DNA of 64,000 nucleotides, taken from the sequence record NC_023568.1; one strand, given 5' to 3'. Every line of letters starts with the position of its first letter. The first letter of the stretch is position 1. A program made the translations under genes and the position numbers. Positions 19,605 through 57,524 of the stretch are shown here, in pieces. The notes beneath the pieces were generated by a model. It searched no databases, was not told the DNA's origin, and saw nothing but the letters and a program-made list of their open reading frames with translations.

Positions 19605-21142
19605 TGTCAGGAACAAACATATTCACGCACGCTAGTGATGCAGCGCAATATGTTTACCTACAGCCCTTCACATCGCCTGGTTCAGCGTTTGAGTCAGGCG
19701 GTGATGTGCAGAGTATAATGGAGCTATTTGACGATAGCGCATTAGCACCACTTCCGTCACTTCCGTATGCGACAACGACTGAGGCTGGTATTGTTGAGTA
19801 CGCAACTCAAACAGAAGCTAATGCACTTGACGACTTATTAACTGTAATCACACCAGCGTCACTAGACGGGGTTGATCAGTTCGTGTCACCAGCAACCAGT
19901 ACTCAGTTAGGTAATCTACAAGAATTGCGTAATACTGATTTGACAAGAACATATTCGTCATCAGATGCAAGTCGTTTGCTGTCATATCGCCGTCTAAATG
20001 AAATGATGACGACTCGTAATGCACTAGCAGATGACACAACAAACGAATCACAAGGTTTTGCTGAGTTTGCAAATCTAAGCGAAACTTTAGCATATAACCC
20101 TGATCGATTCATTTCTCCACTTAGAACGTGGAACTTAATTAAAGCAGAGATACCAAACCCTTGGGCTCAAGCGACAGAAACATACACGGGCGTGCTTCGT
20201 ACTGTAGCAGAACGAGACGGGTATAAATCAGACGGTTCGATTGCAATTACAGTTAAAGGTCTTAATTACGTTAAAGCGACGACATCTAAGCGTGGTGCAT
20301 TCAAATTAACACAGAACAACTATGACCGTAATGCAAGCGATTCAGATGAATATGCTATAACTCCCGGTACAATTGACAATCTAATAGCGACACCGACTAA
20401 GCACGGGTTCTTTGAACTACCAAGCTCGTATGTAAACGACTCAACGAAAGCCACAAGTGCTGCACTTGGTGTTGATTTGAATACACTATTGGGCCCAGAC
20501 GGTGGTACAATTACTGGTGTTTTGAAGTGCGACAACATTTACACAAACATCATTTCTCGTCAAAAGCAGAGCAGCTATGGTGGAACATATTACACAACTG
20601 TGCGAGAGCAGAGAGAAATGTTCCCAAACAACCAATTAGACGCGAAGATCGGTCTCGAAGGGCGCCCTGTGGGTAGTATTTTTCACTGTACTTCATCAGT
20701 TGACCCGAATGAGATTTTCGGTGGCGTATGGTATAAGATGAGAGCAGGTCGAACTATGATGGGGCAGGGTATCGGTGATGATGGGTTCACTCGCAGATAT
20801 TACGCAGCGGGTTCGTTCAGTGACATCGACCGTGTTCAGTTATACGAGAGTAATTTACCACAACACCAACACGCAGGTTGGGGTGAAGCATATACAGGCT
20901 CACGCGAGGGGTGTATTCGCTACGAAACTCATCGAAGCCCGTATGGTGTAACATATACGTGTGATGAATATAATACTGTCAGTTACTGGAGATTCGGTAT
21001 AACAGGTTCGCGTAATAATCCCGGTTCGAAATCTACTGATCGTGATAATTACATGTATTACAACGAAGCAGTTGGTGGTAATGAGCCGCATGAGAATATG
21101 ATGCCATACTACCCAGTTTACATTTGGAGACGAGTTAAATGA
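19604..21142 (+). CDS. gp12: Short tail fibre gp12, paralogue 1
   Basis: N-terminus resembles gp12; ATTTEAGIVEYATQ repeats; collar PVGSIF; HQH metal motif; PHENMMPYYPVYIWRR. Confidence 0.85.
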   Translation: MSGTNIFTHASDAAQYVYLQPFTSPGSAFESGGDVQSIMELFDDSALAPLPSLPYATTTEAGIVEYATQTEANALDDLLTVITPASLDGVDQFVSPATSTQLGNLQELRNTDLTRTYSSSDASRLLSYRRLNEMMTTRNALADDTTNESQGFAEFANLSETLAYNPDRFISPLRTWNLIKAEIPNPWAQATETYTGVLRTVAERDGYKSDGSIAITVKGLNYVKATTSKRGAFKLTQNNYDRNASDSDEYAITPGTIDNLIATPTKHGFFELPSSYVNDSTKATSAALGVDLNTLLGPDGGTITGVLKCDNIYTNIISRQKQSSYGGTYYTTVREQREMFPNNQLDAKIGLEGRPVGSIFHCTSSVDPNEIFGGVWYKMRAGRTMMGQGIGDDGFTRRYYAAGSFSDIDRVQLYESNLPQHQHAGWGEAYTGSREGCIRYETHRSPYGVTYTCDEYNTVSYWRFGITGSRNNPGSKSTDRDNYMYYNEAVGGNEPHENMMPYYPVYIWRRVK

Positions 21143-22566
21143 GCAAAGGAACTCAAATTTTCAATCACGTGATTGACGATGCGGGTACGGTTACAGTTGA
21201 AGTCGAAGGTACTTCCTTTGATGGTCTTACTGGGGGTAATAACGATCTCCAAACGTGTCTTGAGCTTGTACAAGCTCATGCACTTCAACCATTACCCGAT
21301 TACCCTATAGCATCAACATCTGTCGCGGGTATTACATTGTTAAGTGATAATGCAGCAGTCGCAGATGAGCTTAATAACACAAGCGCGGTGACACCATCTG
21401 CATTAAATTATTGGATGGAAAATCACGCGACTGCAACAGAACTTCAATACGGTTTTGTGAAGCTGATTACAAACAGCACGATTGATAACATTGACCCGAC
21501 AGCCGCAGTAGAAGAAGCACAGAAACATGCATTCACGCTTAAAACATTGAACTACGCGTTGAATACTCGTTTCTATGCAACTGAATCTTCGCCGGGTGCT
21601 GTACGGCTAGCGACATATGCACAAGCAACGACAACAGGCACATTGTCTAATAGTGTGGCTATGACCCCACAGCGAGTTAAGGAAATGCTTGACGTGTGGG
21701 CGAATACTACCGCATCAGATGCTACAGAAACGACGAAAGGGTTGATTCGATTAGCAAATGCAACTGAAGTAAACAGCACATCAGCATCAGAAAACAATCT
21801 AGCAATTTCACCGTATCGATTCAATGAACGCACAGCGACAACTACGAGAAAGGCAGGTTTCTATCTACCGAACTCAACAGTTGCAAATGCGCGTACATCT
21901 AATGACCATGCAGTCACAGTCGGTACATTAGATTTATTCACTGCGACTAGCTCACGTGTTGGTGTTGCGAAACTTGCAAACAATCTAACAACAAACGACG
22001 CGACTCAAGCACTAAGTGCTGCAATGGGTTATAAGTTGAATAATGAAAAGATTGGGGTTTCAGGCGGGACAGTAACTGGTACATTGAAAATTGACGATGT
22101 TCAATCTGTAAGTGGTACTCAGTTAATGACGAATGGTCTGATTGAATCATCAGCCATGTTGAATATGTACCCTGTTGGTGCTATTTACATGTCACTTGAA
22201 TCTACATCACCAGCTACGCTATTCGGCGGGACATGGTCTAGAATTGCAGAAGGTCGTGTGCTTGTATCTGAAGGTACACATGGTGGTAGAACATTCAACG
22301 TAAGACAAACAGGTGGTGAATACGAAGTTATCTTAACTGAAGAAACAATGCCAACTCACAAACACGCGGGTTGGGGTGATCGTTGGACTTACGGTGGCAA
22401 CGGACTAGGGTTTGGAGTTGCATACGAATATGGTAGAAGCAACCCAGGTTCAGGTCGCACTGATAATGACAACTACTTGTATTACTCATCACCAGAAGGT
22501 GGTGGTCAACCACATAATAACGTACAGCCGTACTATACTGTTTACATGTGGGAAAGAACTGCATAA
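21139..22566 (+). CDS. gp12: Short tail fibre gp12, paralogue 2
   Basis: ATETTKGLIRLAN repeats; MYPVGAIYMS collar; HKH motif; PHNNVQPYYTVYMWERTA. Confidence 0.85.
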   Translation: MSKGTQIFNHVIDDAGTVTVEVEGTSFDGLTGGNNDLQTCLELVQAHALQPLPDYPIASTSVAGITLLSDNAAVADELNNTSAVTPSALNYWMENHATATELQYGFVKLITNSTIDNIDPTAAVEEAQKHAFTLKTLNYALNTRFYATESSPGAVRLATYAQATTTGTLSNSVAMTPQRVKEMLDVWANTTASDATETTKGLIRLANATEVNSTSASENNLAISPYRFNERTATTTRKAGFYLPNSTVANARTSNDHAVTVGTLDLFTATSSRVGVAKLANNLTTNDATQALSAAMGYKLNNEKIGVSGGTVTGTLKIDDVQSVSGTQLMTNGLIESSAMLNMYPVGAIYMSLESTSPATLFGGTWSRIAEGRVLVSEGTHGGRTFNVRQTGGEYEVILTEETMPTHKHAGWGDRWTYGGNGLGFGVAYEYGRSNPGSGRTDNDNYLYYSSPEGGGQPHNNVQPYYTVYMWERTA

Positions 22567-22606: not shown

Positions 22607-22634
22607 GGGTGAGATTGATTTCTCACCCTTTTTT
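22607..22634 (+). terminator. Intrinsic terminator after the gp12 pair
   Basis: GGGTGAGA-TTGATT-TCTCACCC-TTTTTT. Confidence 0.85.
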
Positions 22635-22658
22635 GTATTAGCGCAGCGAAGAAATGGC

Positions 22659-22737
22659 AAGAGGCGGAAAAATTCCGTCTCATCTTAGTAGTATTAGTGG
22701 TTTTAGTGAAGTTAGGGATATTAGTATGATTAGTATT
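22659..22737 (+). repeat. Hairpin plus six TTAG units at 9-bp spacing (copy A); inverted repeat of 48690-48764
   Basis: 22659-22709 equals the reverse complement of 48714-48764 at 50/51 nt. TTAG starts at 22685, 22694, 22703, 22712, 22721, 22730. Confidence 0.92.
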
Positions 22738-22816
22738 AAATACGTGTTTAAAACCATGAATATGCTTGCTATTATTAAACACATAAAGACATTCCCTCTC
22801 TGTTTCTTTGTATTGC

Positions 22817-22824
22817 TATAAATA
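22817..22824 (+). promoter_or_regulatory. Late promoter for wac
   Basis: Exact TATAAATA. Confidence 0.85.
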
Positions 22825-22863: not shown

Positions 22864-24546
22864 ATGACAATTCAAAAGCCTATCATTGAAGAGCTTAGAT
22901 ATGTAAATGGTCAACCAGATCCTTCTCAACGTCCCGATCAGACTCGAATCAATTGGGCTAAGAACGGTGAAAGCATTAACGGTGCTTCTGGTGACACGAC
23001 TTCAGACGGTGTATTAAACCGCGCAGGAGTACAGATTCAAGAAAACGTTCTAAACTCTCATTACAACACAAAAGCACAGCAAAGCGCAATTGAAGAACTT
23101 GTTGATACTGTTAACGAACTGACAGGTGGCGGTGACGCTAACTTAGGTTCTCGTGTGTCACAAAACGAGTTTGATATTGATGTACTTGAAGGTCAAATGA
23201 CTAACGTCATTGATGACATCGGTGTACCGAGTAGCGTTGACGTACTTGCAACAGGTCTGCATAAAGGCATCGAAGATGTTGAAGCAGATATTGGTGTTCG
23301 TAACAGCCTAGATATTCCAAACGAAGTTGAAAACAACGATACAGTTCGTAAAGATCTATATTTCATCAAGCGTCGTATTGGTAATGACCGTAACTACGAT
23401 GTCAACGGCAACCCATCGCCTAGTACAAACCCAACTGGTATGAAATATCAGATTGAAGATCTGTACAACAAAACAGCCACGATCAACGCTGAAATTGGCG
23501 AGAACGCAATCCCGCTTTCAATCAACGGTCGTTTATACGAACTAGAGCAAAACTCGCAAGTTGGTTCTGTTGATCAGATTCGTGATGAACTAGGTGAAAC
23601 GGCAGATGCCGACCCTGCTCGTCCCGTGTATCTTCGTCTTGATGATGCTGAAAGTTCTATTTCAGACAATGCATCAGATATTGCATTATTACAACAGGAA
23701 GTTGAAACGCCGACTACCGGTCTACTTGATCGCGTTAGCGCGAATGAAGTTACAATTGCAGATAATCAGTCACAGATTGGCTCCGTTACTAATTTATTTA
23801 TTGAAATGTCAACTGATATCGGTTCATACGCAGTAGATGACGTGTACTCGGGTAGCATGAAAGCTCGTCTATCGACGTTTAACGACGATATCAATAGATT
23901 GTGGGGTCGTTTAGGGGCTACTGACGCAGAAACTGGCACAGTGTCTTACAGAGTGTCACAGCTTGAGTCTAGTCTAGGTGAGCGTACAAACCCTGTTGAA
24001 TTTACTGCATGGTACACGATTCAAGAAAACCGTGGCTTAGTTGAATCTGCTCAGGCAGACGTTGACGGTCTATTGACTGTAGTTGGTCAGAGTGATAGCG
24101 AAGTGGGTACATTGCGTGCTCGTGTTCTGGAACTTGAAGCACAGTTGGATCATGCATTATTGTCTTCGGATACTCCGAGTACAGTTGATTTGACAACTAC
24201 ACCTACAGATGTATTCAGTTTATTCAATCTTGAGACAGACGTGAGTGGTTACACGTATGCAGGTGGTGTATTGACACGTAACGGTCTATCATTGAGCAAA
24301 ACGATGTCTATTCATTGGGTTGTTGTTTCACCAGTAAACACTACAATCACGATTCGAATTGATTTCGATCATGATAACGGCACAAGCTCATCAATCGAGA
24401 AAACACGTACGCTTCGTGCAAACCAAGTTACTCCAGTTACAATCACTAACGTTGCGAATCTAGATGACTTGAGTGAGATTCGAGTATTGGCTAGTACAGC
24501 GGCTAATGTTACTATCGACCATGAATCATTTGTACTAAAAGTATAA
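22864..24546 (+). CDS. wac: Fibritin (whisker)
   Basis: LRYVNGQPDPSQ..RINWAKNGE..GAS..DGVLNRAGVQIQEN N-terminus, then a long segmented coiled coil. Confidence 0.92.
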   Translation: MTIQKPIIEELRYVNGQPDPSQRPDQTRINWAKNGESINGASGDTTSDGVLNRAGVQIQENVLNSHYNTKAQQSAIEELVDTVNELTGGGDANLGSRVSQNEFDIDVLEGQMTNVIDDIGVPSSVDVLATGLHKGIEDVEADIGVRNSLDIPNEVENNDTVRKDLYFIKRRIGNDRNYDVNGNPSPSTNPTGMKYQIEDLYNKTATINAEIGENAIPLSINGRLYELEQNSQVGSVDQIRDELGETADADPARPVYLRLDDAESSISDNASDIALLQQEVETPTTGLLDRVSANEVTIADNQSQIGSVTNLFIEMSTDIGSYAVDDVYSGSMKARLSTFNDDINRLWGRLGATDAETGTVSYRVSQLESSLGERTNPVEFTAWYTIQENRGLVESAQADVDGLLTVVGQSDSEVGTLRARVLELEAQLDHALLSSDTPSTVDLTTTPTDVFSLFNLETDVSGYTYAGGVLTRNGLSLSKTMSIHWVVVSPVNTTITIRIDFDHDNGTSSSIEKTRTLRANQVTPVTITNVANLDDLSEIRVLASTAANVTIDHESFVLKV

Positions 24547-39679: not shown

Positions 39680-40177
39680 ATGAGTCAATTGAAAAAACAC
39701 GCAGAGTCGTTAACTAAAGAAAAACTAGACGAGTTTGCAAAAGAATATTACGGCATCGAACTTGACCGTCGTAAATCAAAAGGCGCAATGGCTAAGAAGC
39801 TTGTAGAAGAAGCTGAAGGTAAAACGCCATTGAAACAACTACCATGGGAAGAACTTCTTGTAGAGACGAAAGATGAAACCAAAGAAATTAAAGAAATTTC
39901 TGAAGTGAAAACTGAAGTCGTTGATAAAGTAGAACTACCAATCGATGAATCATTTGAACCAATGCCATTGCCATTCCGTCGTGGTCGTGAATTTTTCATG
40001 ACTGCTTCTGATAGCGCGGTTACATCTGCGGAAGCTATTATCGCAGGGGATGGTTCGCTTGATGATGTACTTGCATCAGATCTTCGCGTAGTTAAATCAA
40101 TCTTGCATTATGTCGATAAAGACGGCAAGGTGCTAGTGCGTGAAACTCGCAATAGTCAATTCATCACAATTAAATAG
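39680..40177 (+). CDS. inh: Inh-like protein (prohead protease inhibitor family)
   Basis: DEFAKEYYGIELDRRKS N-terminus and HYVDKDGKVLVRETRNSQFITIK C-terminus, close to T4 Inh. Confidence 0.85.
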   Translation: MSQLKKHAESLTKEKLDEFAKEYYGIELDRRKSKGAMAKKLVEEAEGKTPLKQLPWEELLVETKDETKEIKEISEVKTEVVDKVELPIDESFEPMPLPFRRGREFFMTASDSAVTSAEAIIAGDGSLDDVLASDLRVVKSILHYVDKDGKVLVRETRNSQFITIK

Positions 40178-40185
40178 GAACTGAA

Positions 40186-40524
40186 ATGACAACACCAATC
40201 TATACTGATATGAACCTTGCAGTCGAACTTGATGATGCGACTGTAGCAGCGGCAGACGCTGCGAAAAGTGGGTATGATGATGTAACAACGTCTGTGCTTA
40301 ATCACTCAGGCGAATCTTACATTATCGTAGACAAGCAAACTTATGAAGAGCTTAAAGCTGCGATTGAAACTGCTAGTCCGTTGAGTTCAATTACTGGTCT
40401 TTCTCAAGAATGCGTTGACATTCTTGCAGGCGCGGTTGATTCAACAACTACACTTTGCAGAGAACATACCAATAGCCGATTCTTCCGAATCGCGTGGACT
40501 GTTACTACACCTGCTCCCGAATAA
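40186..40524 (+). CDS. Hypothetical late protein; possible Inh/Hoc C-terminal-domain relative
   Basis: RBS AGGA; LNHSGESYIIV and VDSTTTLCREHTNSRFFRI. Confidence 0.75.
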   Translation: MTTPIYTDMNLAVELDDATVAAADAAKSGYDDVTTSVLNHSGESYIIVDKQTYEELKAAIETASPLSSITGLSQECVDILAGAVDSTTTLCREHTNSRFFRIAWTVTTPAPE

Positions 40525-40554
40525 AAAAAAAGCCCGCACTTAGCGGGCTTTTTT
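40523..40554. terminator. Bidirectional terminator
   Basis: A9-GCCCGC-ACTTA-GCGGGC-T6 between convergent genes. Confidence 0.9.
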
Positions 40555-40582
40555 GTGTCTCTAAATCGAGCTGTATGCGTTT

Positions 40583-41767
40583 CTAAGCGACGAACGCTAC
40601 ACGCTGTACGATTGTCTGTTTTTCGTCGCGAAACTCTTCGTGCGCTTTTACAGTCGCTTTTACAGTTACTGAAACGCCTTTCTCAATCGCTTCGCCGTCG
40701 TTATCACGTAGACGCTTTGAACCAAACCACACGATTAGATTGTTTTGTTCATCGCGAAACTTGTGAATGAACGTGTCACCGTAGTAGCCTTCAGAAACGA
40801 TAACCGCTTCAAGAGTGACATTAAAGTTCTCGCGTTTTTTGATAGTACCGACGTACTCAGATTCTGGCAAATCTGCTTTACGTTCAGCTTCGCGTTTAGC
40901 TAGAATCTCGCGCTCTTTTGCTTTGTTGAAAGCTAAGATAGCCGCTGCAATGTAACCAGTTTGTTTGTACTCGATGAATGGTGCAGAACAAGACGCGATG
41001 ACGTTATGCATGAAATCGTTAGTCGCTTCTTGAGTTGCAACCCATTCTAAAATCTCTTTTGCTTGCTCTTCACAATTGTCGTAATCATATTCATCTAACA
41101 TTGCATCGCGTTCGGTACGAAGTGCAGGTGTACCTGCATTAATCATGTCAAGAACCCATTGACGAGTCACACCGCCACCGTGATAACAACCTTTGTGTTC
41201 AACATACATAGCAGCCCAAGCAAGAATCTGAAGCGCGTTATATGAAATTTTACGAGAACCACCACCCCAAGACTCTTCATCACCGAAATCAGCGATTGCA
41301 GTGTAGAACGTCGCTAGTGAGTCGATAGATTTAGTCGGCAAGTAGTATTTCAAGCATGAACCACCGACGCGCATTTCTTCTTTAGTCTCTTCATTCTGAA
41401 TGACGTAAGTTACATTGCGTTGACGATTAGAGTTACAGTGATCGCATGTTGTGTCGCCTAGAAGATGACGGTGATTTGTTTCGTTGTTTGAACGAATAAG
41501 ATTTGTCGCGTGGTCAAGTTGAGTCAAGAAAGACCAACCTTTAGTTGACGGGTATTCACCGCGAATAGTAACATCAACGTAGTATTCACGATGCTTTTGG
41601 TGATTGATAATAATGACTTTTGAGTACACTTCACCGAACTCAAATGTAATTTCAGCAACACCGAGACGTTTTGCAATCTTGTTAGTAGATGCAATACGCG
41701 CTTCAAACTCGCTCATGTAGATTGATTTGATTGTGTAAGTGTTTTCGAATTTGTTTAGTGAAGTCAT
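40583..41767 (-). CDS. Conserved hypothetical early protein (CDHC...C metal-binding motif, C-terminal OB-fold-like region)
   Basis: TCDHCNSNRQRNVTYVI..RVGGSCL; C-terminal YVGTIKKRENFNVTL..IVWF..VTVKATVKAHEEFRDEKQTIVQRV. Confidence 0.8.
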   Translation of the reverse strand: MTSLNKFENTYTIKSIYMSEFEARIASTNKIAKRLGVAEITFEFGEVYSKVIIINHQKHREYYVDVTIRGEYPSTKGWSFLTQLDHATNLIRSNNETNHRHLLGDTTCDHCNSNRQRNVTYVIQNEETKEEMRVGGSCLKYYLPTKSIDSLATFYTAIADFGDEESWGGGSRKISYNALQILAWAAMYVEHKGCYHGGGVTRQWVLDMINAGTPALRTERDAMLDEYDYDNCEEQAKEILEWVATQEATNDFMHNVIASCSAPFIEYKQTGYIAAAILAFNKAKEREILAKREAERKADLPESEYVGTIKKRENFNVTLEAVIVSEGYYGDTFIHKFRDEQNNLIVWFGSKRLRDNDGEAIEKGVSVTVKATVKAHEEFRDEKQTIVQRVAFVA

Positions 41768-41809
41768 AATGTTCTCTCTTGTAATGGACGATTCGTTTCG
41801 TTGATAGAG

Positions 41810-41838
41810 ATATTACGGCTTTTTGGTGTTGTCGTCAA
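41810..41838 (-). promoter_or_regulatory. Early sigma70-type promoter
   Basis: TTGACG-17 bp-TAATAT on -. Confidence 0.7.
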
Positions 41839-41932
41839 CCAATAGATACAAAAAAAGCGCAAAAATGCGCTTTTTAATTATCAAGCAGGTACGAAATCTG
41901 CTGAATTCATGAAAATCTTGAAATGTTTTCAT
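41813..41932 (-). pseudogene. CTS-bearing mini-ORF or remnant (MKTFQDFHE...)
   Basis: RBS AGAGAG then MKTFQDFHE. In frame it runs through the terminator; a +1 shift gives SADFVPA-stop-stop just before the terminator. Confidence 0.45.
41850..41875 (-). terminator. Terminator closing the late 43456-41932 operon
   Basis: A7-GCGCA-AAAA-TGCGC-T5. Confidence 0.8.
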
Positions 41933-41939
41933 TGCTCTC

Positions 41940-42860
41940 TTATTTTCTAATGAAATATGTTTTAGTCGAGACTTTCCCTTCGACCGTTTTATATGTGTAA
42001 TTCGGTAATGTATCAGCATATCGTTTTACTAAACGATTGTATAGTTTTATTCTCGAATCACTGTCGTTTTTTATATCTCGCTCTGCACTGAAATAAATTG
42101 TTTCTGGCTCTCGCTCGTCTATAAATTCACGCATACCGCTCATTACTGTCGCAAACACACCATACATATTGCCTCGACCTGTTGCGCTGTAAGTATAATC
42201 ACCCGAACTGTTCATACCTAAGAACACAAGTTCCCATGCATCGTTTTGTTCTTGATACTGTATTGCAATCGCGTATTCGTCCCCGTTTACCGTGAACGTA
42301 CCACCCCAACTGTGAATTCTCTTCTCAACCCAGTGTATTTTAGATGGTCGGTCAAATGCCTCAGTCAAGTTAACTGAAGATAACCATTCACGCCATGTCT
42401 TCTTATTACCGATCTTGGCAAATGGGATATCGTCATGATCTAGCCACTGAGCCGAGCGGTCATATGACTGAGAAGTATCAAACCCTCTATAATCATCACC
42501 AACCCACAACCATTTGTGATGCCATATTTGGTTTACTTGACGTGGTTTAGAAACAACACCGTCTCTGTAAGTAATCATCATACCCGCGGCTGGTTCTTGT
42601 ACAGTATCAAATTCAACTGAATCGTAGAAGGCAACTCCACCTTTCTTGTAGTCAATTCGTACTACATTCGGAGTAAATTGTGGGTTTGCAATTGATACTT
42701 GAGTACGAGCATCAGCAACCATTTGCTTGAACTCATCTGGGATATAGTCAATGTGAACATATAATGAACCGCCAATGTCTTTACCCACGCCCCACTTGCT
42801 GCGTTTTACTGCACTACCTTTTCGAGTTTTCAATGTAGCGCGTTCAAAAATTATGCTCAT
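41940..42860 (-). CDS. Hypothetical two-domain late protein, candidate internal head protein
   Basis: 306-aa ORF with RBS GAGG under late box 43479; internal LTE/AFD junction. Confidence 0.8.
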   Translation of the reverse strand: MSIIFERATLKTRKGSAVKRSKWGVGKDIGGSLYVHIDYIPDEFKQMVADARTQVSIANPQFTPNVVRIDYKKGGVAFYDSVEFDTVQEPAAGMMITYRDGVVSKPRQVNQIWHHKWLWVGDDYRGFDTSQSYDRSAQWLDHDDIPFAKIGNKKTWREWLSSVNLTEAFDRPSKIHWVEKRIHSWGGTFTVNGDEYAIAIQYQEQNDAWELVFLGMNSSGDYTYSATGRGNMYGVFATVMSGMREFIDEREPETIYFSAERDIKNDSDSRIKLYNRLVKRYADTLPNYTYKTVEGKVSTKTYFIRK

Positions 42861-42862
42861 TA

Positions 42863-43456
42863 TTACCTCGTTGCTGCGTTTGTAATATTGCGAATCATAC
42901 GAATTGCGTATTCAGTATCGCCAGTCATAGCCGATGACGCTGCTTTATCGACGTAAAATGTGCTATCTTCAATCATGTTCAAGTGATGGTAAATCTCACG
43001 AAAATCATGACGGTCGTATTCTTTCACATTAAAACGAAACGCACCTGCCTGCTTATCTTCGTCATGAACACGCTTGTATTCATCTACGACACGAATCATT
43101 TCGGTTGCGTATTTCTTCATTTCCATGTTATCAAGCTTTAAACGCTTTGCAGCTTTCATTACTTCGTCACGAGGACGTTCAAGCTCGATTACGTCTTTAA
43201 GAACATTCAGACTGTGAATTGTGTTCACTGCTGCACGCTCCATTCTTAGCTTATGGTCTTCTAGTGACTTATTGTGCTTTCTAAGTTCACCCGATGCTGT
43301 CGCACTCGCGATCAAACCTGCAAACACACCCCAGAAGCCACCTTTGCGCTGCATACGCTTTTTAACTTCACCTTTCGAACCCGATGTTGCTGCTTTAAAT
43401 TGAGCCCATCTACCGGTTTGTTTAGCTTTGTCCATTTCTGTTAAAAATTCTATCAT
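42863..43456 (-). CDS. Hypothetical late helical protein, candidate internal head protein
   Basis: Starts MIEFLTE; first gene after TCTAAATA (43479-43486, -). Confidence 0.8.
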   Translation of the reverse strand: MIEFLTEMDKAKQTGRWAQFKAATSGSKGEVKKRMQRKGGFWGVFAGLIASATASGELRKHNKSLEDHKLRMERAAVNTIHSLNVLKDVIELERPRDEVMKAAKRLKLDNMEMKKYATEMIRVVDEYKRVHDEDKQAGAFRFNVKEYDRHDFREIYHHLNMIEDSTFYVDKAASSAMTGDTEYAIRMIRNITNAATR

Positions 43457-43478
43457 TGTTAACCCCTTTGTTTACTAT

Positions 43479-43486
43479 TATTTAGA
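43479..43486 (-). promoter_or_regulatory. Late promoter variant TCTAAATA
   Basis: Between the terminator at 43495 and the 43456 ORF. Confidence 0.7.
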
Positions 43487-43494
43487 CGCAAACG

Positions 43495-43522
43495 AAAAAA
43501 GGGCGACCGAAGTCACCCTTTT
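43495..43522 (-). terminator. Terminator with UUCG loop
   Basis: On -: GGGTGAC-TTCG-GTCGCCC-T6. Confidence 0.88.
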
Positions 43523-43534
43523 AAATTGGTTAAT

Positions 43535-44161
43535 TTAACCGTATACTGATTTGATATTGTCGAAAAACGCAGTTGAACCGTGTAGTTTCGCTACAACATA
43601 CGATGCATTCTGACGAACAAGTTGTTTAACGTTCAGTTCTTTCAACTGCTCTTTTGACAAGTTCGCGCTATGTACAAGCGTAAGAATAGAACGTGCGTGA
43701 TCTGACAATGCAAGCGTTGAAATATAACGAGCTTGCTGTTTCGGTTCAAGTTTTTTAAATGCATCAACCGCTTGTGGACCCGCAACAGCTACTGCACGCC
43801 CCAGACCAAGATTGAGAACACGTGTCAATAGAGATTCCATCCCTAATACAGGCTTACGTGGCGACTCGCGTTTTGGCATGAGTACTTCTAATTTACCGTC
43901 ACCTTTCAACGTGTATACAGGAATCTCGGTGTGACCGAACGTTTCGAATCGAGTGACCATGATTTCAGGTGCATTCTGAACGTTAGCTTGAACACGACGA
44001 CGAAGACGCTCATCATATTCACCACCATTAAGTGAATATACAATCTCTGCAACTGTCAAGTCACGCTTTTCAAGCAATTGAATTACTGCTTTGCGGAAGT
44101 TACGACGCTTAGGTGACTCGTTAGTTGCAAGTGCTTTACGTACGATGTCTAAATCTTTCAT
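43535..44161 (-). CDS. Hypothetical early protein, possible N-terminal winged helix
   Basis: FRKAVIQLLEKRDLTVAEIVYSL...RRRVQANV..IPVYTL pattern. Confidence 0.7.
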   Translation of the reverse strand: MKDLDIVRKALATNESPKRRNFRKAVIQLLEKRDLTVAEIVYSLNGGEYDERLRRRVQANVQNAPEIMVTRFETFGHTEIPVYTLKGDGKLEVLMPKRESPRKPVLGMESLLTRVLNLGLGRAVAVAGPQAVDAFKKLEPKQQARYISTLALSDHARSILTLVHSANLSKEQLKELNVKQLVRQNASYVVAKLHGSTAFFDNIKSVYG

Positions 44162-44176
44162 AATATATTTCTCTCA

Positions 44177-44443
44177 TTAAATTACGATTGGCTCTTGAAT
44201 AGCCATGAATGTCTTGCCAGTGAATTCTTGATATGCTTCATGAAAGCTGTCAAGTTCATCGTCAACAATTATTTTTTCACCAGTATCAAATGAATATAAA
44301 ATACTGTCATATTTACCAGTTGCAGTATTAAACATCGGTTCAGTTGTGAATTTAACGCCACACGGTGTATAAAACTCTCTAGGTTTTTCAACAGGAACTT
44401 GTACAGCGTTATGTTCAGCAAAAGCTGTTTCGAGTTTGTTCAT
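44177..44443 (-). CDS. Hypothetical early protein
   Basis: 88-aa ORF with RBS GAGAG directly after the early promoter. Confidence 0.75.
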   Translation of the reverse strand: MNKLETAFAEHNAVQVPVEKPREFYTPCGVKFTTEPMFNTATGKYDSILYSFDTGEKIIVDDELDSFHEAYQEFTGKTFMAIQEPIVI

Positions 44444-44480
44444 ATTCTGCTCTCTTAGTTATGTTGTGTTAACGATGACT

Positions 44481-44509
44481 ATAATAAGCAAAAACATTTG
44501 AGTTGTCAA
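44481..44509 (-). promoter_or_regulatory. Early sigma70-type promoter
   Basis: TTGACA-17 bp-TATTAT on -, the same hexamers as the 8600-8628 promoter. Confidence 0.8.
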
Positions 44510-44998
44510 CTACTTTCTTCGCCATCTCTCAAGTTTTTCATCATATTCGCTATGCTTCCATAAGTCGAATACGATTGTACCTCTCTGAAACCACCAGACC
44601 AATGAAATAGTATCATTTAACTTAGGGTCTTTTGGGTTTTTCCCTGAATAAAATTCACTACTAGGGTGTGAGTGATAAATCGACTTTTTAACTGCGAACT
44701 TATACCCACCTTCAGGTTTACCGACTTCTTCTGGCGGGTATAAGTTACCTAGATACGCAACTTGATATACAGTGTTCTTGAATACGATTCGACTTGAATC
44801 AATATTGAAGAGCAAGTTCTGGTATTGAGCAGCATTCGCAGCAATCTTCCACGGGTGCTTCGGTTTCGTTTCTAGTAACTCATCGATTTTCGGCTCAGGG
44901 ATTAGTTTGGCTAGGTTATGATTACCCCACCCCTCTTCAAGTGATAAACTCAGTTCGATACCGTAAAGCGTGTTTTCATATTCATTAAATCGTAACAT
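44510..44998 (-). CDS. Hypothetical late protein; CTS-like start, possible RelE/HigB-like C-terminal domain
   Basis: MLRFNEY start, RBS GAGG, C-terminal IYHSH...ISLVWW..GTIVFDLWKHSEYDEK. Confidence 0.75.
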   Translation of the reverse strand: MLRFNEYENTLYGIELSLSLEEGWGNHNLAKLIPEPKIDELLETKPKHPWKIAANAAQYQNLLFNIDSSRIVFKNTVYQVAYLGNLYPPEEVGKPEGGYKFAVKKSIYHSHPSSEFYSGKNPKDPKLNDTISLVWWFQRGTIVFDLWKHSEYDEKLERWRRK

Positions 44999-45001
44999 AA
45001 A

Positions 45002-45514
45002 TTACCTCAGATAAATGAAGCTGTTCGAAAGACGGTCGTGAACTAAAAGATGACCATTTCGCTTAACCCAATATTCAATCGTCTTCAATTCGTGAGAGTC
45101 GCGTCGACCTATATTCCAATCATGAATCACATCATGCGCAACTGGCTGATATAGCTCATCACCACGGCGATAAGTAGGCATCCATTTAGGCTTGAATTCG
45201 TCCTTGATTACTAATGTTACGTTTTCATCACCTAAAGGGGCATTAGCAGAAACACCTTCTAATTCTTTCTTAACGTCGTCTGAAAGCTCTTTGACTACAA
45301 TCGCGTCCGATTCATCGACTGATTCACAGCGCGTCTCAGACTCGATTACAGAGCATTCTAGTGGTAGTTCTTTAACCTCGCGTAGCTCGTGTGTGAATAA
45401 CTCGTCGATCATCTTGCTTTTAGTCAGAGATTTATCAAGTTCGATGTCGTAGTACTCTTTTGCAAATTCTGCAACTACGCGCTTGGTTTGTTTCTTTAGA
45501 TATTCTTTAATCAT
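45002..45514 (-). CDS. inh: Second Inh-like protein, at the T4 inh position next to uvsW
   Basis: AEFAKEYYDIELDKSLTKSKMIDEL and YWVKRNGHLLVHDRLSNSFIYLR; paralogue of 39680-40177. Confidence 0.75.
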   Translation of the reverse strand: MIKEYLKKQTKRVVAEFAKEYYDIELDKSLTKSKMIDELFTHELREVKELPLECSVIESETRCESVDESDAIVVKELSDDVKKELEGVSANAPLGDENVTLVIKDEFKPKWMPTYRRGDELYQPVAHDVIHDWNIGRRDSHELKTIEYWVKRNGHLLVHDRLSNSFIYLR

Positions 45515-45523
45515 AGTTTTACC

Positions 45524-45733
45524 TTAGCATTCAATTGTTACCCACACATTTCGATTTAAATCGAAAAATGTAAGTTCATTATCTGCACCGTTTTCATTTT
45601 TACGTTGTTCTTCTCGATTGCAATCAAGATGTGGTAGATAATGCTTGCATAAAGTCGCGTGATATTTCTTGCCTTTATGCTCAAACTTAAAGCAACCATC
45701 TTTCATCTTGTAAAACATTTCGTCTCTTGTCAT
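45524..45733 (-). CDS. Small hypothetical protein (possible WYL_2/DUF2693-like SH3 fold)
   Basis: KFEHKGKKYHATL..LP..LTFFDLNRNVWVTI; first gene after late box 45765. Confidence 0.65.
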   Translation of the reverse strand: MTRDEMFYKMKDGCFKFEHKGKKYHATLCKHYLPHLDCNREEQRKNENGADNELTFFDLNRNVWVTIEC

Positions 45734-45746
45734 GAATTTAGACCTC

Positions 45747-45772
45747 TATAAATACAGTTATACATATTTAGA
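45747..45772. promoter_or_regulatory. Overlapping-divergent late promoters (TATAAATA + for uvsW; TCTAAATA - for the inh operon)
   Basis: Boxes at 45747-45754 (+) and 45765-45772 (-). Confidence 0.75.
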
Positions 45773-45797
45773 CAAAACTCGCATAGAGAGAAAAATC

Positions 45798-47330
45798 ATG
45801 ACATGTGACATTAAAATTGAGTACCACGATGAGAGTTATGCGAGAGTCGTAGCCGAGCCAAGCATCACTCACGAAATGATTGACTATTTCTCATTTCTAA
45901 CAGATGGGTACAAATTTAACCCGAAATTTAAAATGGGCATTTGGGATGGCAAAATTCGACTAATGACGTATCAAGGTCTATTGCCATACGGTCTAGTCGG
46001 ACAAGCTAAAGCGTTTGCATCAAATATGATGTATACGATTGAAACCGATCCAATGCTAGATCCGATTGAGAAAATTTCTCGTGAAGATTTCGAAGCATGG
46101 GTTGAGTCTATTGACATCTACTCAGGGTCGAATAAGATTTCACCGTATTGGTATCAGATGGACTCTGTGTTTCACGGAATTAACAACCAACACAGTCTAT
46201 TGAATCTACCAACATCTGCGGGTAAATCATTAATTCAGTCGCTGATTACTAAATGGTTCTTAGCACAAGAAGAGCACGAACTTCAGAAAGTATTAGTGAT
46301 TGTACCTACAACTGCACTTGTTCAGCAAATGCGCGATGACTTCTTAGATTATCGTTTATTCGAACACAGCGACATTTATCAGATTCGTGGTGGTGTTGAT
46401 CGAGACGCAATCGGTGACTGCCGAATCGTTGTATCTACATGGCAATCTGCTGTAAAACAACCGAAAGAATGGTTTGACCAATTCGGTATGCTTTTAGTCG
46501 ATGAGTGTCACTTGGCAACAGGTAAGTCATTAGACGGTATAATCAAGAAAATGACAAACTGTGAATACAAAATCGGTCTTACTGGCTCACTTCGAGACGG
46601 TAAAGCGAATATTCTACAGTACGTTGGTTCATTCGGTGATATTTTCCGACCTGTTTCAACTGCACAGCTAATGGAAGAAGGGCAAGTAACAGATCTGAAG
46701 ATCAATTGCTTGATGCTTGAATACCCACAGCCGTTACGTGACGAGATGAAAGGTAGTTCATATCAAGAAGAAATGAAATTCATTCTTGAGAACAAGCAGC
46801 GAAATCGTTACTTGATTAAGCTTGCGCATCATTTAAGCGCGAAGAAAGGCGAAAATACGTTATTGCTATTCAAGAACATCAAACACGGTAAATTGCTTTA
46901 CGAAGCGTTGAAGAGCGTATATGACCCAGAGAAAGTGTTCTACGTATCTGGTGAGACTAAAACAGACGACCGTACGCATGTGAAGAAGATTGCAGAAGAT
47001 ATTGACGGGGCGATTATTGTCGCATCATACGGTGTATTCTCGACTGGTATCAGTATCAAGAAACTACACAATGTAATTTTCGCGCACCCTACGAAGAGTA
47101 AGATCATCAACTTGCAGTCGATTGGTCGTATTCTACGTAAACACGGTTCGAAAGTTACGGCGAAGCTGTTTGACATTATCGACAACTTGGCAATCAAGCC
47201 GAAACGTAAGAACGCTAAGAAGCCGTACACTCACGTAAATTATACTATGAAGCATGGTATGCAACGTATTGAGCTTTACAACCAAGAAGAGTTCAAATAC
47301 GCAGTCAAGAAAGTAGATCTTGCCGCATAG
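45798..47330 (+). CDS. uvsW: UvsW SF2 DNA helicase
   Basis: NLPTSAGKSLI, VDECH, GLTGS, ASYGVFSTGISI and QSIGRILR. Start at ATG 45798. Confidence 0.97.
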   Translation: MTCDIKIEYHDESYARVVAEPSITHEMIDYFSFLTDGYKFNPKFKMGIWDGKIRLMTYQGLLPYGLVGQAKAFASNMMYTIETDPMLDPIEKISREDFEAWVESIDIYSGSNKISPYWYQMDSVFHGINNQHSLLNLPTSAGKSLIQSLITKWFLAQEEHELQKVLVIVPTTALVQQMRDDFLDYRLFEHSDIYQIRGGVDRDAIGDCRIVVSTWQSAVKQPKEWFDQFGMLLVDECHLATGKSLDGIIKKMTNCEYKIGLTGSLRDGKANILQYVGSFGDIFRPVSTAQLMEEGQVTDLKINCLMLEYPQPLRDEMKGSSYQEEMKFILENKQRNRYLIKLAHHLSAKKGENTLLLFKNIKHGKLLYEALKSVYDPEKVFYVSGETKTDDRTHVKKIAEDIDGAIIVASYGVFSTGISIKKLHNVIFAHPTKSKIINLQSIGRILRKHGSKVTAKLFDIIDNLAIKPKRKNAKKPYTHVNYTMKHGMQRIELYNQEEFKYAVKKVDLAA

Positions 47331-47335
47331 ATACG

Positions 47336-47364
47336 AAAAAGGGAGCAATTTGCTCCCTTTTTTT
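47336..47364. terminator. Bidirectional terminator
   Basis: A5-GGGAGCA-ATT-TGCTCCC-T7. Confidence 0.9.
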
Positions 47365-47365
47365 A

Positions 47366-47476
47366 TTAGTCTGAAAAGATTGCTGAGAGAATCGCACCGA
47401 TTAACTCAAAAAATAATTCAAATGGCGCCCATAGCCAGTCGAAGAACCCGCGATCTCGTTTACGATTCTTGCTCAT
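47366..47476 (-). CDS. 36-aa putative membrane peptide
   Basis: Hand translation MSKNRKRDRGFFDWLWAPFELFFELIGAILSAIFSD; starts 5 nt after the uvsY.-2 stop and ends at the terminator. Confidence 0.6.
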   Translation of the reverse strand: MSKNRKRDRGFFDWLWAPFELFFELIGAILSAIFSD

Positions 47477-47480
47477 ATCT

Positions 47481-47651
47481 TTACCCGTTTAGCAGTTGTG
47501 TTTCTACAAGTTGCGTTTCGCCACCAGACTCAGAAATAGACATTTCTGATAAATGTTGCTGACATTGACCTGCGTGAACTGTGCCTTGTGGCGTATCAAT
47601 AGTGACATCGCCTTCTTTAATAGGTTGTTTACATACAACACAATGTGCCAT
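47481..47651 (-). CDS. uvsY.-2: UvsY.-2-like small Zn-binding protein (DUF2685)
   Basis: MAHCVVCKQPI..TPQGTVHAGQC..ISES..QLVETQLL matches the T4 uvsY.-2 pattern. Confidence 0.85.
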   Translation of the reverse strand: MAHCVVCKQPIKEGDVTIDTPQGTVHAGQCQQHLSEMSISESGGETQLVETQLLNG

Positions 47652-47815
47652 TAGTCTAACCCCTTTTTTATAAGTGATTGGTAGAGATAAAACCCATCGA
47701 CTTGTAAAGAGCCATGAAGTTCCCATCCCTCGTTAAGTAGTTTCTGCACTTCCTCTTCAAAAGTTCTTGAATTATTGCCATGCACTACTTTGTATTTAAT
47801 GTAATCAGTCTGCAT
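47651..47815 (-). CDS. 54-aa hypothetical protein (DUF1737-like)
   Basis: Hand translation MQTDYIKYKVVHGNNSRTFEEEVQKLLNEGWELHGSLQVDGFYLYQSLIKKGLD; stop overlaps the next ATG. Confidence 0.7.
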   Translation of the reverse strand: MQTDYIKYKVVHGNNSRTFEEEVQKLLNEGWELHGSLQVDGFYLYQSLIKKGLD

Positions 47816-47816
47816 A

Positions 47817-48230
47817 TTACAGACCGATTGCTAGTTTGAACAACTGAGACGCTTTACCACCATCGAAAACTTTACCTGTAGCTTTTAGAGCGCCCATTAG
47901 TTTACCCATGTCACGCATAGAATCAGCACCAGTTTCTAGAACAAAGTTAGAAACGAACGTGTCTAGATCTGATTCAGAGATTTTTGCAGGTAGTAGAGAC
48001 TCAAGAACTGCGTTTTCTGCGTTCAGAATGTCTACATGATCGCCTTGTGCGTGTTCAAGAGCAAGTTTGTTGTTGTCAATCGCGCTTGAGATTACTTTGA
48101 TGCAAGACTCGTCATCGTGTTTTTGACGACGGTCAAGTTCACCCATAATGACACCGAGTACAGACGCAACTGCGTTGTTACGGTCTTTACGAGCTTGTAG
48201 GCGTGTTGTTTTAATTGTTTCGATGATCAT
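47817..48230 (-). CDS. GatB/YqeY domain protein
   Basis: ARKDRN..VLGVIMGEL, ENAVLESLLPAKISE, SMRDMGKLMGALK and DGGKAS. Confidence 0.88.
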   Translation of the reverse strand: MIIETIKTTRLQARKDRNNAVASVLGVIMGELDRRQKHDDESCIKVISSAIDNNKLALEHAQGDHVDILNAENAVLESLLPAKISESDLDTFVSNFVLETGADSMRDMGKLMGALKATGKVFDGGKASQLFKLAIGL

Positions 48231-48640
48231 ACTATACCACTCTCAATTTTTCTGTTGTCAATAATGTGTTTGATTGTGAAGCCCATTTGACTAATGCCTT
48301 TCAAAGCTTCTTCGATGAATGATAACACATCTTTCATGTGTTGAAAAGTAGCAATTGCACGTTGAAGATATTCATCACCCGCAAGAGCATATTTCATTTC
48401 ACTCTTTTCTACGATGAAATCACAAACTTCATCGTCATGTTTGCCGCTATAAAAGAGCCAGCGGTCTTTTCTCACAGCTTCCATTTTCATTTCAGCTTTG
48501 ATAAGTAGTTGTCTTGCATCGGCTCGGTATGCAAGCCACTTCGCATGAAGAACGGGAATTCGAATAGCTGCTGTTTCTAAAGCAGTTGTGTCAATTTTCA
48601 CGTCTTCGTGATATTCAATTTTTAAATCTTGTAGCTTCAT
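48227..48640 (-). CDS. uvsY: Recombination mediator UvsY
   Basis: DVKIDTTALETAAIRIPVLHAKWL, WLFYSGK and GFTIKHIIDNRKIESG. Confidence 0.93.
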   Translation of the reverse strand: MKLQDLKIEYHEDVKIDTTALETAAIRIPVLHAKWLAYRADARQLLIKAEMKMEAVRKDRWLFYSGKHDDEVCDFIVEKSEMKYALAGDEYLQRAIATFQHMKDVLSFIEEALKGISQMGFTIKHIIDNRKIESGIV

Positions 48641-48689
48641 AATAACCTCGCGTCATCAAGTATACATTTCATCATTGGTGGCTTAAACA

Positions 48690-48764
48690 CTAATCCCTCT
48701 AATACTTCTAATATCACTAAAAGCACTAATACTACTAAGATGAGACGGAATTTTTCCGCCTCTT
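48690..48764 (-). repeat. Hairpin plus six TTAG units at 9-bp spacing (copy B)
   Basis: CTAA on + at 48690, 48699, 48708, 48717, 48726, 48735; core identical to copy A except one base. Confidence 0.92.
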
Positions 48765-48785
48765 ACCGTTTTTCGCTTCGCGTAT

Positions 48786-48804
48786 AAAAAAAGCCCCGAA
48801 GGGC
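48786..48804 (-). terminator. Terminator after gp35
   Basis: On -: GCCC-TTCG-GGGC-T7. Confidence 0.85.
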
Positions 48805-48808
48805 TCTT

Positions 48809-51502: not shown

Positions 51503-51510
51503 AAATCACC

Positions 51511-57474: not shown

Positions 57475-57524
57475 CACACTATACGATACTATATCATACT
57501 ATAAAATACAAGGTAAAATACAAT

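Follow-up and report, generated by a model that had tools for sequence, protein, structure and literature searches.

A six-copy hairpin and 9-bp repeat module of Vibrio phage VH7D and its relatives, a possible origin-type entry site for replication proteins

The DNA analysed here (the window, 64,000 nt) belongs to Vibrio phage VH7D (AC No. KC131129 / NC_023568, Schizotequatrovirus). It covers positions 124001-188000 of the record, and a window position equals the record position minus 124000. Between the genes of a gp12-like short tail fibre and of fibritin (wac), the window has a non-coding element, copy A, with a small box, a hairpin and an array of 9-bp units with a TTAG core. The region around the element is 100% identical to the VH7D record. 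An earlier reading of the window, made from its letters only (the sequence-only reading), had described the element as duplicated, but a BLAST search of the VH7D record with the 126-bp element revealed six copies and not two. One of them, copy B, is also in the window, on the opposite strand between a gp35-like gene and uvsY. The element is tentatively regarded as a cis-acting DNA module of KVP40-like phages (Schizotequatrovirus, Mylasvirus) that would be an origin-type unwinding or entry site for phage replication proteins. Both copies and their neighbours in the window are as follows.

21139-22566, plus strand: gp12-like short tail fibre gene (Pfam Gp10_C and fibre repeats), 5' neighbour of copy A
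22607-22634, plus strand: intrinsic terminator upstream of copy A, with an 8-bp stem (22607-22628, five G-C pairs) and a T-run
22641-22647, plus strand: 5' box GCGCAGC of copy A, a variant of the DNA mini-hairpin motif GCGNAGC
22661-22669 and 22673-22681, plus strand: hairpin of copy A, GAGGCGGAA-AAA-TTCCGTCTC, nine pairs (one of them G.T) around the loop AAA
22682-22684, plus strand: invariant ATC directly 3' of the hairpin of copy A
22685-22738, plus strand: array of copy A, six 9-bp units TTAGTAGTA TTAGTGGTT TTAGTGAAG TTAGGGATA TTAGTATGA TTAGTATTA
22747-22775, plus strand: sigma-70-like promoter 3' of copy A, TTTAAA-17 bp-TATTAT, with TG before the -10 hexamer
22817-22824, plus strand: T4-type late promoter TATAAATA before wac, outside the repeat and given as context
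22864-24546, plus strand: fibritin gene wac, 3' neighbour of copy A
48809-51502, minus strand: gp35-like fibre gene of 897 aa (annotated as gp35 in KVP40 and nt-1), 5' neighbour of copy B
48786-48805, minus strand: intrinsic terminator upstream of copy B, AGCCC-TTCG-GGGCT and a T-run
48775-48781, minus strand: 5' box GCGAAGC of copy B, the DNA mini-hairpin motif
48742-48762, minus strand: hairpin of copy B, of the same sequence as that of copy A
48685-48738, minus strand: array of copy B, six 9-bp units TTAGTAGTA TTAGTGCTT TTAGTGATA TTAGAAGTA TTAGAGGGA TTAGTGTTT
48659-48687, minus strand: weak sigma-70-like promoter TTTAAG-17 bp-TATACT, read by eye, overlapping the last unit of copy B
48640-48227, minus strand: uvsY (Pfam UvsY, 3.6e-50), 3' neighbour of copy B

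The TTAG cores of copy A start at 22685, 22694, 22703, 22712, 22721, and 22730, with an exact step of 9 bp, and GTGTTTAA comes after the array. Terminator, nine-pair hairpin with one G.T pair, six cores, and GTGTTTAA had all been reported by the sequence-only reading and are all present. Its alignment of the two copies holds as well: 22659-22709 matches 48764-48714 of the opposite strand in 50 of 51 bases, and with the adjoining similarity included the two copies are 85% identical over 89 nt (22652-22740 against 48683-48771). The array is not a product of chance. Four TTAG at a 9-bp step matched six times, only in the two arrays of the window, with 0.00 matches expected from 100 shuffles; three TTAG at this step matched eight times in the window, with 0.02 expected in shuffles. 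The upstream box (GCGCAGC in copy A, GCGAAGC in copy B) is conserved and is a part of the element that goes beyond the earlier description. The hexamers of the copy A promoter are kept in KVP40, nt-1, and D480, while its spacer is variable. The copy B promoter is below the threshold of the consensus scan, and by eye it has the same position in KVP40, nt-1, D481, and F86. The RefSeq annotation of VH7D is without nearly all minus-strand genes, such as uvsY, gp35, gene 1, gp3, and a cluster of 27 tRNA genes, and the record therefore looks empty at 107.7-126 kb and 164.5-179 kb (about 40500-55000 in the window).

The six copies on the VH7D record, with approximate record positions, are:

c1, 13.85 kb, plus strand: after an open reading frame (ORF) of no assigned function, near rnlB
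c2, 69.4 kb, plus strand: between an ORF of no assigned function and a lipoprotein-like ORF
c3, 120.75 kb, minus strand: between gp3 and gene 1 (deoxynucleoside monophosphate (dNMP) kinase)
c4 (copy A), 146.65 kb, plus strand: between gp12 and wac
c5 (copy B), 172.74 kb, minus strand: between gp35 and uvsY
c6, 215.5 kb, plus strand: between a SprT-like gene and a glutaredoxin gene

Consecutive copies are 55.6, 51.3, 25.9, 26.1, 42.8, and 45.3 kb apart. Each copy is intergenic and has the same direction as the genes on both sides. This link to transcription was not seen in the sequence-only reading: every copy is co-oriented with it, and five of the six abut a sigma-70-like promoter. No array of at least three units was found in the VH7D genome beyond these six loci, and the array was thus rejected as a general feature of early promoters.

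Among phages, matches are confined to those of Vibrio. The BLAST check proposed with the sequence-only reading gave the same six loci in 51 records, with typically six places per record; these cover the KVP40/VH7D group, nt-1 (Mylasvirus), the D480/K5xx oyster-farm phages, F86, and 1.081.O. An assembly artefact is ruled out, because these 51 phage records were sequenced independently and carry the element at the same loci. When loci c3-c6 were compared with VH7D as the reference, identity was 62-98% in the array and 62-100% in the hairpin (83-100% at c3, c4, and c5), as against 51-95% in adjacent coding DNA and 42-88% in the promoter spacer regions. Judged by these identities, which extend across genera, the array is better conserved than the neighbouring coding DNA. 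Unit number varies only by whole 9-bp units, from five to seven per copy, and copy c4 of nt-1 is short by exactly one unit. Orthologous copies may have different hairpins (GCCCAA/TTGGGC in VH7D c1, GCGGAA/TTCCGC in KVP40 c1), and paralogues within one genome are nearly identical in unrelated flanks, which therefore points to gene conversion between copies.

A hairpin-anchored pattern matched only KVP40 and VH7D in IMG/VR and no copy in 185,579 representative bacterial genomes; in metagenomes it gave 44 matches, of which six are real relatives. A generic pattern of five TTAG at 9-bp steps was unspecific in IMG/VR, where it hit mostly tandem repeats of giant viruses, and a scan with exact 17-mers was over-strict and returned chance matches. 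The array is not mentioned in the literature found, which includes the paper on Schizotequatrovirus plasticity and that on the PeSL cassettes (PMC4122927) and does not extend to the KVP40 genome paper; a paper on jumbo-phage islands deals with Pseudomonas and has no bearing on the module.

The anatomy of the module was drawn from 29 aligned copies and is given 5' to 3' on the sense strand. A strong intrinsic terminator comes first in c3-c6. It is followed by the 5' mini-hairpin box, GCGNAGC or GCGNNAGC: in 18 of the 29 copies the box occupies -47 to -40 from the first TTAG, and in one further copy it is at -26. Its variants are GCGAAGC (14 copies), GCGTCAGC (2), GCGCAGC (1), and GCGTTAGC (1); they differ at free loop positions only and retain the G...A loop closure and the GC stems. 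Orthologues of copy A in KVP40, nt-1, and D480 have GCGAAGC, and no 5' box was found in c6 copies or in KVP40 c1. After a variable spacer of 10-13 nt there is a hairpin of 6-9 bp with the core GCGGAA-AAA-TTCCG(C/T) or GCCCAA-AAA-TTGGGC, then ATCATC or CTCATC, and then the array of 5-7 units with consensus TTAGTRRTA, which keeps the exact 9-bp step in all 29 copies. The sequence-only reading held that only the TTAG cores and the phase are conserved in the distal units, and this has to be corrected: TTAG is invariant, position 5 is T > A > G and lacks C, position 6 takes purines only, and just 12 of 1260 unit positions are C.

The last part is a sigma-70-like promoter 1-33 bp 3' of the array in c1, c3, c4, c5, and c6, with -35 GTTTAA or TTGACA, 17 bp, and a TATAAT-like -10. 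Its hexamers are conserved and its spacer is not, and no MotA box was found at -30 of the adjoining promoters. In c5 and c6 the array runs into the -35 hexamer with its last unit. The order is thus terminator-module-promoter in c3-c6. Copy c1 has the module and then an overlapping stem-loop and promoter, and c2 has neither promoter nor terminator; its fifth unit, TTAGGAGTA, provides the gene that follows with its Shine-Dalgarno sequence in VH7D, KVP40, and D480. On the 3' side of c1 (L001, 13905-13960), a terminator-like stem GGGGA...TCCCC with a T-run overlaps the TTGACA promoter, with a compensatory GGAGA...TCTCC in KVP40 c1 (L146), as is typical of a PeSL.

Covariation in the main hairpin is confined to two adjacent pairs, both sides of which have changed in three sequences (GG/CC to CC/GG). 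Over the 29 copies, 82.7% of the cells in the hairpin columns pair, and this falls to 34-54% if one strand is shifted by 1-3 columns against the other. A degenerate hairpin was seen in 1.081.O c6, F86 c5, and two of the bacterial island copies described below (L219 and L222).

The array has 75% A+T and a GC skew of +0.91. Calculated from nearest-neighbour energies over 54-bp windows, duplex stability is lowest at the array at all six loci when 500 bp to each side are compared, and genome-wide the arrays rank among the 0.03-0.6% least stable windows of this length (copy A 0.17%, copy B 0.6%). This is the behaviour of a DNA-unwinding element. When copy A was folded as single-stranded DNA, the hairpin was the sole stable structure and the array stayed open; the complementary strand folds less well than the top strand. 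The sequence-only reading had taken the G.T pair as a sign that the hairpin forms on the strand read in the late-transcription sense. The better folding of the top strand agrees with the choice of strand, and the pair is equally compatible with RNA and with single-stranded DNA.

Several points favour DNA as the working form. As DNA the mini-hairpin motif has extraordinary stability; its RNA form is much weaker, and r(GCGAAAGC) melts at 39 C (PMC13037366). It occurs at the primase start sites of G4 (GCGAAAGC), St-1, and alpha3 (both GCGTTAGC), and also in RSF1010 ssiA (CCGAAGG) and in the N4 hairpin promoters (PMC13037366). The loops GTCA and GTTA of the box variants are not RNA GNRA loops. With single-strand initiation signals of this kind the module shares the motif GCGNAGC or GCGNNAGC, including the St-1/alpha3 variant, several hairpins on one strand, and a strand-specific signal. 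Such signals have no 9-mer array, unlike the module, and act in single-stranded DNA phages or plasmids with DnaG or RepB' primases.

The metagenome scan led to the phage-like contigs L176 and L183 and to four contigs with a bona fide copy in a non-T4-type context. Tracing of one gene from these gave an 18-kb contig, L215, and then chromosomal loci of V. parahaemolyticus (L218, L219, L221, and L222). They represent a family of islands of V. parahaemolyticus and V. diabolicus, seen over L215 1-18004 and on chromosomes and metagenome contigs. A large serine recombinase was seen in L215 and L219, and the islands also have genes for a small resolvase and a helix-turn-helix protein. Their cargo varies: Thoeris ThsA/ThsB occurs in L215, L218, L221, and L222, and L215 and L219 carry genes for restriction or restriction-modification. 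They also encode a homologue of the T4-type sliding clamp of 323-347 aa, of which shorter forms of 227-249 aa exist (249 aa in L221 and L222). The N-domain of the L215 clamp is 56% identical to that of VH7D gp45. Its insert of 135 aa has no Pfam domain, and a single-sequence AlphaFold model (mean predicted local distance difference test score 44) was too poor for use.

A non-coding control region of about 1.2 kb has a common layout in all five island variants. Two leftward and one rightward TATAAATA are each upstream of co-oriented genes, and the array lies between the divergent ones. ATCATC is followed by a TTAG array of 6-7 units, always directed toward a putative rep gene, and more mini-hairpin motifs (GCGAAGC, GCCGAAGGC, and GCGTAGC) are on the array strand. 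About 365 bp beyond the array there are iterons and the putative rep gene. These iteron/rep modules differ between variants (TATACAACTACG and GTACTCGAAA types), while the array is retained throughout. Island copies have no sigma-70 promoter behind the array, and the control region had no match among the PLSDB plasmids. The islands look like satellites or phage-responsive islands of KVP40-like phages. That a host mobile element with a phage late-promoter motif and a clamp homologue holds the array is hard to explain unless a phage-borne factor recognises it.

Taken together, these features point to a strand-specific, easily melted DNA site at which a multimeric factor assembles, and the six-fold occurrence in every KVP40-like genome along with the capture by islands marks the module as probably a working cis-acting site. 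Of the proposal in the sequence-only reading, a replication origin, a helicase/primase-loading site or a protein-binding array, the general class stands, that is, a selected, strand-specific, cis-acting nucleic-acid site; a role in replication initiation or protein binding would go beyond it. The class is supported because the array is conserved above the flanking coding DNA, changes length by whole units, and stands beside a stem with a compensatory change, and also because of the mini-hairpin motif of primase origins, the extreme meltability, and the capture by islands next to iterons.

From the anatomy, copy number, orientation, conservation, strand bias, meltability, structural motifs, and island capture, we infer melting, hairpin extrusion, protein binding, and a replication role as follows. 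The array, 54 bp of C-free 9-mers rich in TA steps, would open under negative supercoiling or through transcription from the adjoining promoter. The top (non-template) strand would fold into the GCGNAGC mini-hairpin and the hairpin of 6-9 bp, and so keep the bubble open. An oligomer of a phage protein would bind the array with one protomer per 9 nt or bp. The primosome (gp59, gp41, and gp61) would then be loaded, and the gp45 clamp after priming. Six such sites around the genome would be comparable to the five or more origins of T4, with one at the uvsY promoter, the position of T4 oriF.

In iteron plasmid origins, iterons and rep adjoin an unwinding element of A+T-rich repeats, and ribbon-helix-helix proteins (omega, ParG, and MetJ) bind operator arrays of short repeats. 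Judged from such general knowledge, the module resembles both in its tandem short direct repeats for multiple protomers; five to seven evenly spaced units were found in the 29 copies, where an iteron-type array has at least three. The island order of array, iterons, and rep is also that of iteron plasmid origins. The unit of 9 bp differs from the 7, 8 or 13 bp of operator or unwinding-element repeats and from the 17-22 bp of iterons, and no gene of a cognate binding protein was recognised next to the copies, with the island array about 365 bp from the iterons. The CCGAAGG added by the islands is the motif of RSF1010 ssiA.

In T4, oriF is the uvsY promoter region, and all origins, five or more and many of them in late regions, depend on promoters (PMC3016281). 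By analogy, an origin-type site would fit this biology and the island data. Like T4 oriF and oriG, the module has a promoter and an A+T-rich, easily unwound segment of about 50 bp; one module, copy B, is at the uvsY promoter region as is oriF; and there are several sites per genome, many in late-gene regions, on which the non-template strand is expected to be exposed. Its differences from oriF and oriG are the array upstream of the promoter, where the T4 unwinding element is downstream, and the sigma-70-like promoter without a MotA box. It is also a shared repeated sequence with hairpins, unlike the T4 origins, which have no common motif. No support was obtained for synteny between c1 and T4 oriA.

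The iterons of T4 oriE, bound by RepEB in the sequence-only reading and named there as the known analogue, share with the module the evenly spaced direct repeats. The likeness does not go further. The oriE repeats are ATTACCTTCAAC-like 12-mers with a 24-bp period within the coding repeats of gene 5, without hairpins and without sequence similarity to the module. They coincide (L217 2927-3058, T4 record 79426-79557) with the 24-bp-period coding repeats of the gp5 beta-helix, so that their regular spacing may follow from the repeat of the protein. The oriE origin is said to require an early-mode promoter, and its repeats have no defined function (PMC3016281).

Several points weigh against an origin-type entry site. 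The unwinding-prone array is upstream of the promoter, while the T4 oriF/oriG element is downstream, and T4 origins share no motif (PMC3016281). Four of the six copies are just 3' of strong terminators, and an R-loop of an upstream transcript is thus unlikely there. Copy c2 has neither terminator nor promoter and doubles as a source of a Shine-Dalgarno sequence, the distance from array to -35 ranges over 1-33 bp, the covariation of the stem is a single event, and the hairpin is degenerate in the few copies named above. In the islands, the array is farther from the iterons than an unwinding element of the classical type would be. No candidate for an initiator or an array-binding protein was found among neighbouring and replication-cluster ORFs; the neighbours of the copies are fibre genes, uvsY, the dNMP kinase and glutaredoxin genes, and uncharacterised ORFs, with no Rep-like family.

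Somewhat unlikely, in our opinion, is an operator or upstream activating array in double-stranded DNA, to which a small phage or host protein would bind unit by unit, head to tail, and so regulate the sigma-70-like promoter. It would be a means of delayed-early control in phages without T4-style MotA promoters. The position of five of the six copies 1-33 bp upstream of conserved -35/-10 hexamers, with the -35 overlapped in c5 and c6, speaks for it, and the invariant TTAG with constrained positions 5-9 resembles base-specific recognition. Genes downstream include uvsY and those of dNMP kinase and glutaredoxin, which are middle genes in T4. However, both distance and helical phase to the -35 vary, no sigma-70 promoter is behind the array in c2 and in the islands, and the array is at only six of many early promoters. 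The two hairpins, the compensatory change, and the near-absence of C on one strand are left unexplained by an operator, and none of the neighbouring ORFs searched is a candidate regulator gene adjoining a copy.

An RNA element, in which the hairpin and UUAG repeats of untranslated regions would be a platform for an RNA-binding protein or a site of processing or decay, is judged unlikely. Its best arguments are the strict co-orientation with transcription at the six phage loci and in every island variant examined, and the G.U wobble tolerated on the sense strand only. Copies c1 and c2 are within transcription units, c2 as a 5' leader, and the RNA fold of the element has z = -2.2. But four of the six copies are between a strong terminator and the next promoter, where transcription is expected by read-through only, and the pairing predicted inside the copy A array is A-U and G-U self-pairing of the repeats. 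A scan with Rfam 15 gave no match, the best hits being of at most 15 bits with E above 2, far below gathering thresholds. The box variants GCGTCAGC and GCGTTAGC obey the rule of the DNA mini-hairpin and not that of GNRA loops, and as RNA the mini-hairpin has a much lower stability.

The layout of the islands could also suggest a clamp entry site, at which gp44/62 would load gp45 on an unwound or primed structure and thereby enhance T4-type late transcription and perhaps packaging; we consider this improbable as the function of the array. The array is between divergent TATAAATA in all five island variants, and the islands have a gp45 homologue of their own. In VH7D, two of the 14 exact TATAAATA sites are 132 and 327 bp downstream of c4 and c6. 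Clamp loading in T4 late transcription is polar, and polar loading would give the orientation rule. Against these stand c1, c2, c3, and c5, which have no exact TATAAATA within 1.5 kb, and the site, at which no 3' end or nick is known. Clamp entry and an origin overlap mechanistically, because priming precedes clamp loading.

PeSL cassettes consist of a terminator stem-loop, an A+T-rich spacer, sigma-70-like -35/-10 hexamers, and a Shine-Dalgarno sequence, and nt-1 and KVP40 are among the phages that have them (PMC4122927). The module could be such a recombination cassette, a terminator-promoter unit spread and homogenised by gene conversion that would serve only termination, promotion, and homology for shuffling, including that between phage and island, and the chance of this is small. 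Like PeSLs, it is an intergenic, genome-repeated terminator stem-loop followed by a sigma-70-like promoter, and PeSLs are recombination sites. Its position at terminator/promoter junctions is that of the PeSLs of nt-1 and KVP40 (PMC4122927). Paralogues more alike than their flanks and orthologues with different hairpins indicate conversion, identity levels often shift across the module, and it occurs in an unrelated mobile element. Still, the module adds a mini-hairpin box, a second hairpin, and a 9-bp array to the PeSL as published (PMC4122927), and it has only six copies at fixed core and variable loci, with much tighter conservation. Homology alone would not demand six loci kept in three phage groups, indels of whole units, and constrained unit positions. 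The hairpin and mini-hairpin motifs are preserved, and the islands retain the array while its surroundings are exchanged.

Satellites commonly copy the packaging signals of their helpers, and repeat arrays can wrap oligomeric rings of the small terminase subunit. The array in the islands would agree with a pac-like site that this subunit recognises and that islands have copied for packaging. This is very improbable, as against it there are six sites per genome in both orientations, no link to terminase genes was found, and T4-type phages use headful packaging without a unique pac site (PMC4122927 and general knowledge).

The coding reading, of a small protein from the 55-codon ORF 22654-22821 that starts with ATG and spans copy A, or of a read-through extension of the upstream gene, was rejected and has practically no chance in spite of similar small ORFs annotated in D480 and nt-1 records and some differences between copies A and B that look conservative by eye in one frame: the start codon is missing in copy B and KVP40 copy A, orthologues do not share one frame with respect to the upstream gene (e.g., VH7D c1 and KVP40 c1), the hairpin swap turns Gly-Pro-Ser into Pro-Gly-His, TTAG is without any synonymous variation, and no suppressor tRNA was found. 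Small hypothetical proteins are annotated over the element in D480-group and nt-1 records (L127 359-532, L194 162-323, L197 263-403, L198 279-398, L199 376-465, and L196 306-407); these and the unannotated VH7D ORF of 55 codons are almost certainly spurious and created by the repeat.

Other repeats were recorded during the analysis. In the window, a 10/20-bp tandem repeat TAAAATACTA of 4.8 copies lies between the gp59-like and gp32-like genes (57462-57511) and, by analogy with T4, may be an unstructured leader for gp32 autoregulation. A minus-strand coding region (52638-53559) has diverged direct repeats of 49-76 nt with 63-79% identity, probably because it belongs to a long tail fibre gene with internal repeats. 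Two arms 5.7 kb apart (39731-39765 and 45435-45469) form an inverted repeat of 35 nt with 89% complementarity. In an unrelated family, AATTAG arrays with a 9-bp period face CTAATT arrays as inverted sets (L151, L155, L178, L179, L190, L207, L211, and L213); its hosts are candidate-phyla and gammaproteobacterial metagenome-assembled genomes, with two contigs of 432-508 kb, and it may be another protein-binding or origin array. At the ends of many contigs, CAGGGCTGGAAAAAACCTAGG followed by runs of TTTTAGG or TTTTTAGG (L150, L152, L156, L172, L174, L180, L182, L186, L187, and L191; Ga0049105, Ga0209255) looks like telomere-like or terminal repeats of one element.

The choice of origins in T4-like phages is still an open question: a common motif is missing from the T4 origins, and what the oriE repeats do was never settled (PMC3016281). 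The sharply defined six-copy module would make the question directly testable in a large group of phages relevant to ecology and aquaculture, since it can readily be mutated and transferred to a plasmid. More speculatively, and with considerable doubt on our side, the array and its hairpins could be the defining origin signal (or clamp/primosome entry signal) of KVP40-like phages, read by a predicted oligomeric phage protein and pirated by V. parahaemolyticus islands for replication and expression during infection. If true, a shared origin motif would be described for the first time in a T4-like group, and the island family would be one previously undescribed. The module links virulent phages to satellite-like or phage-responsive defence islands in their host, and if the islands are such, they would be the first system tied to a T4-type helper by having copied a cis element and carrying late promoters and a clamp homologue.

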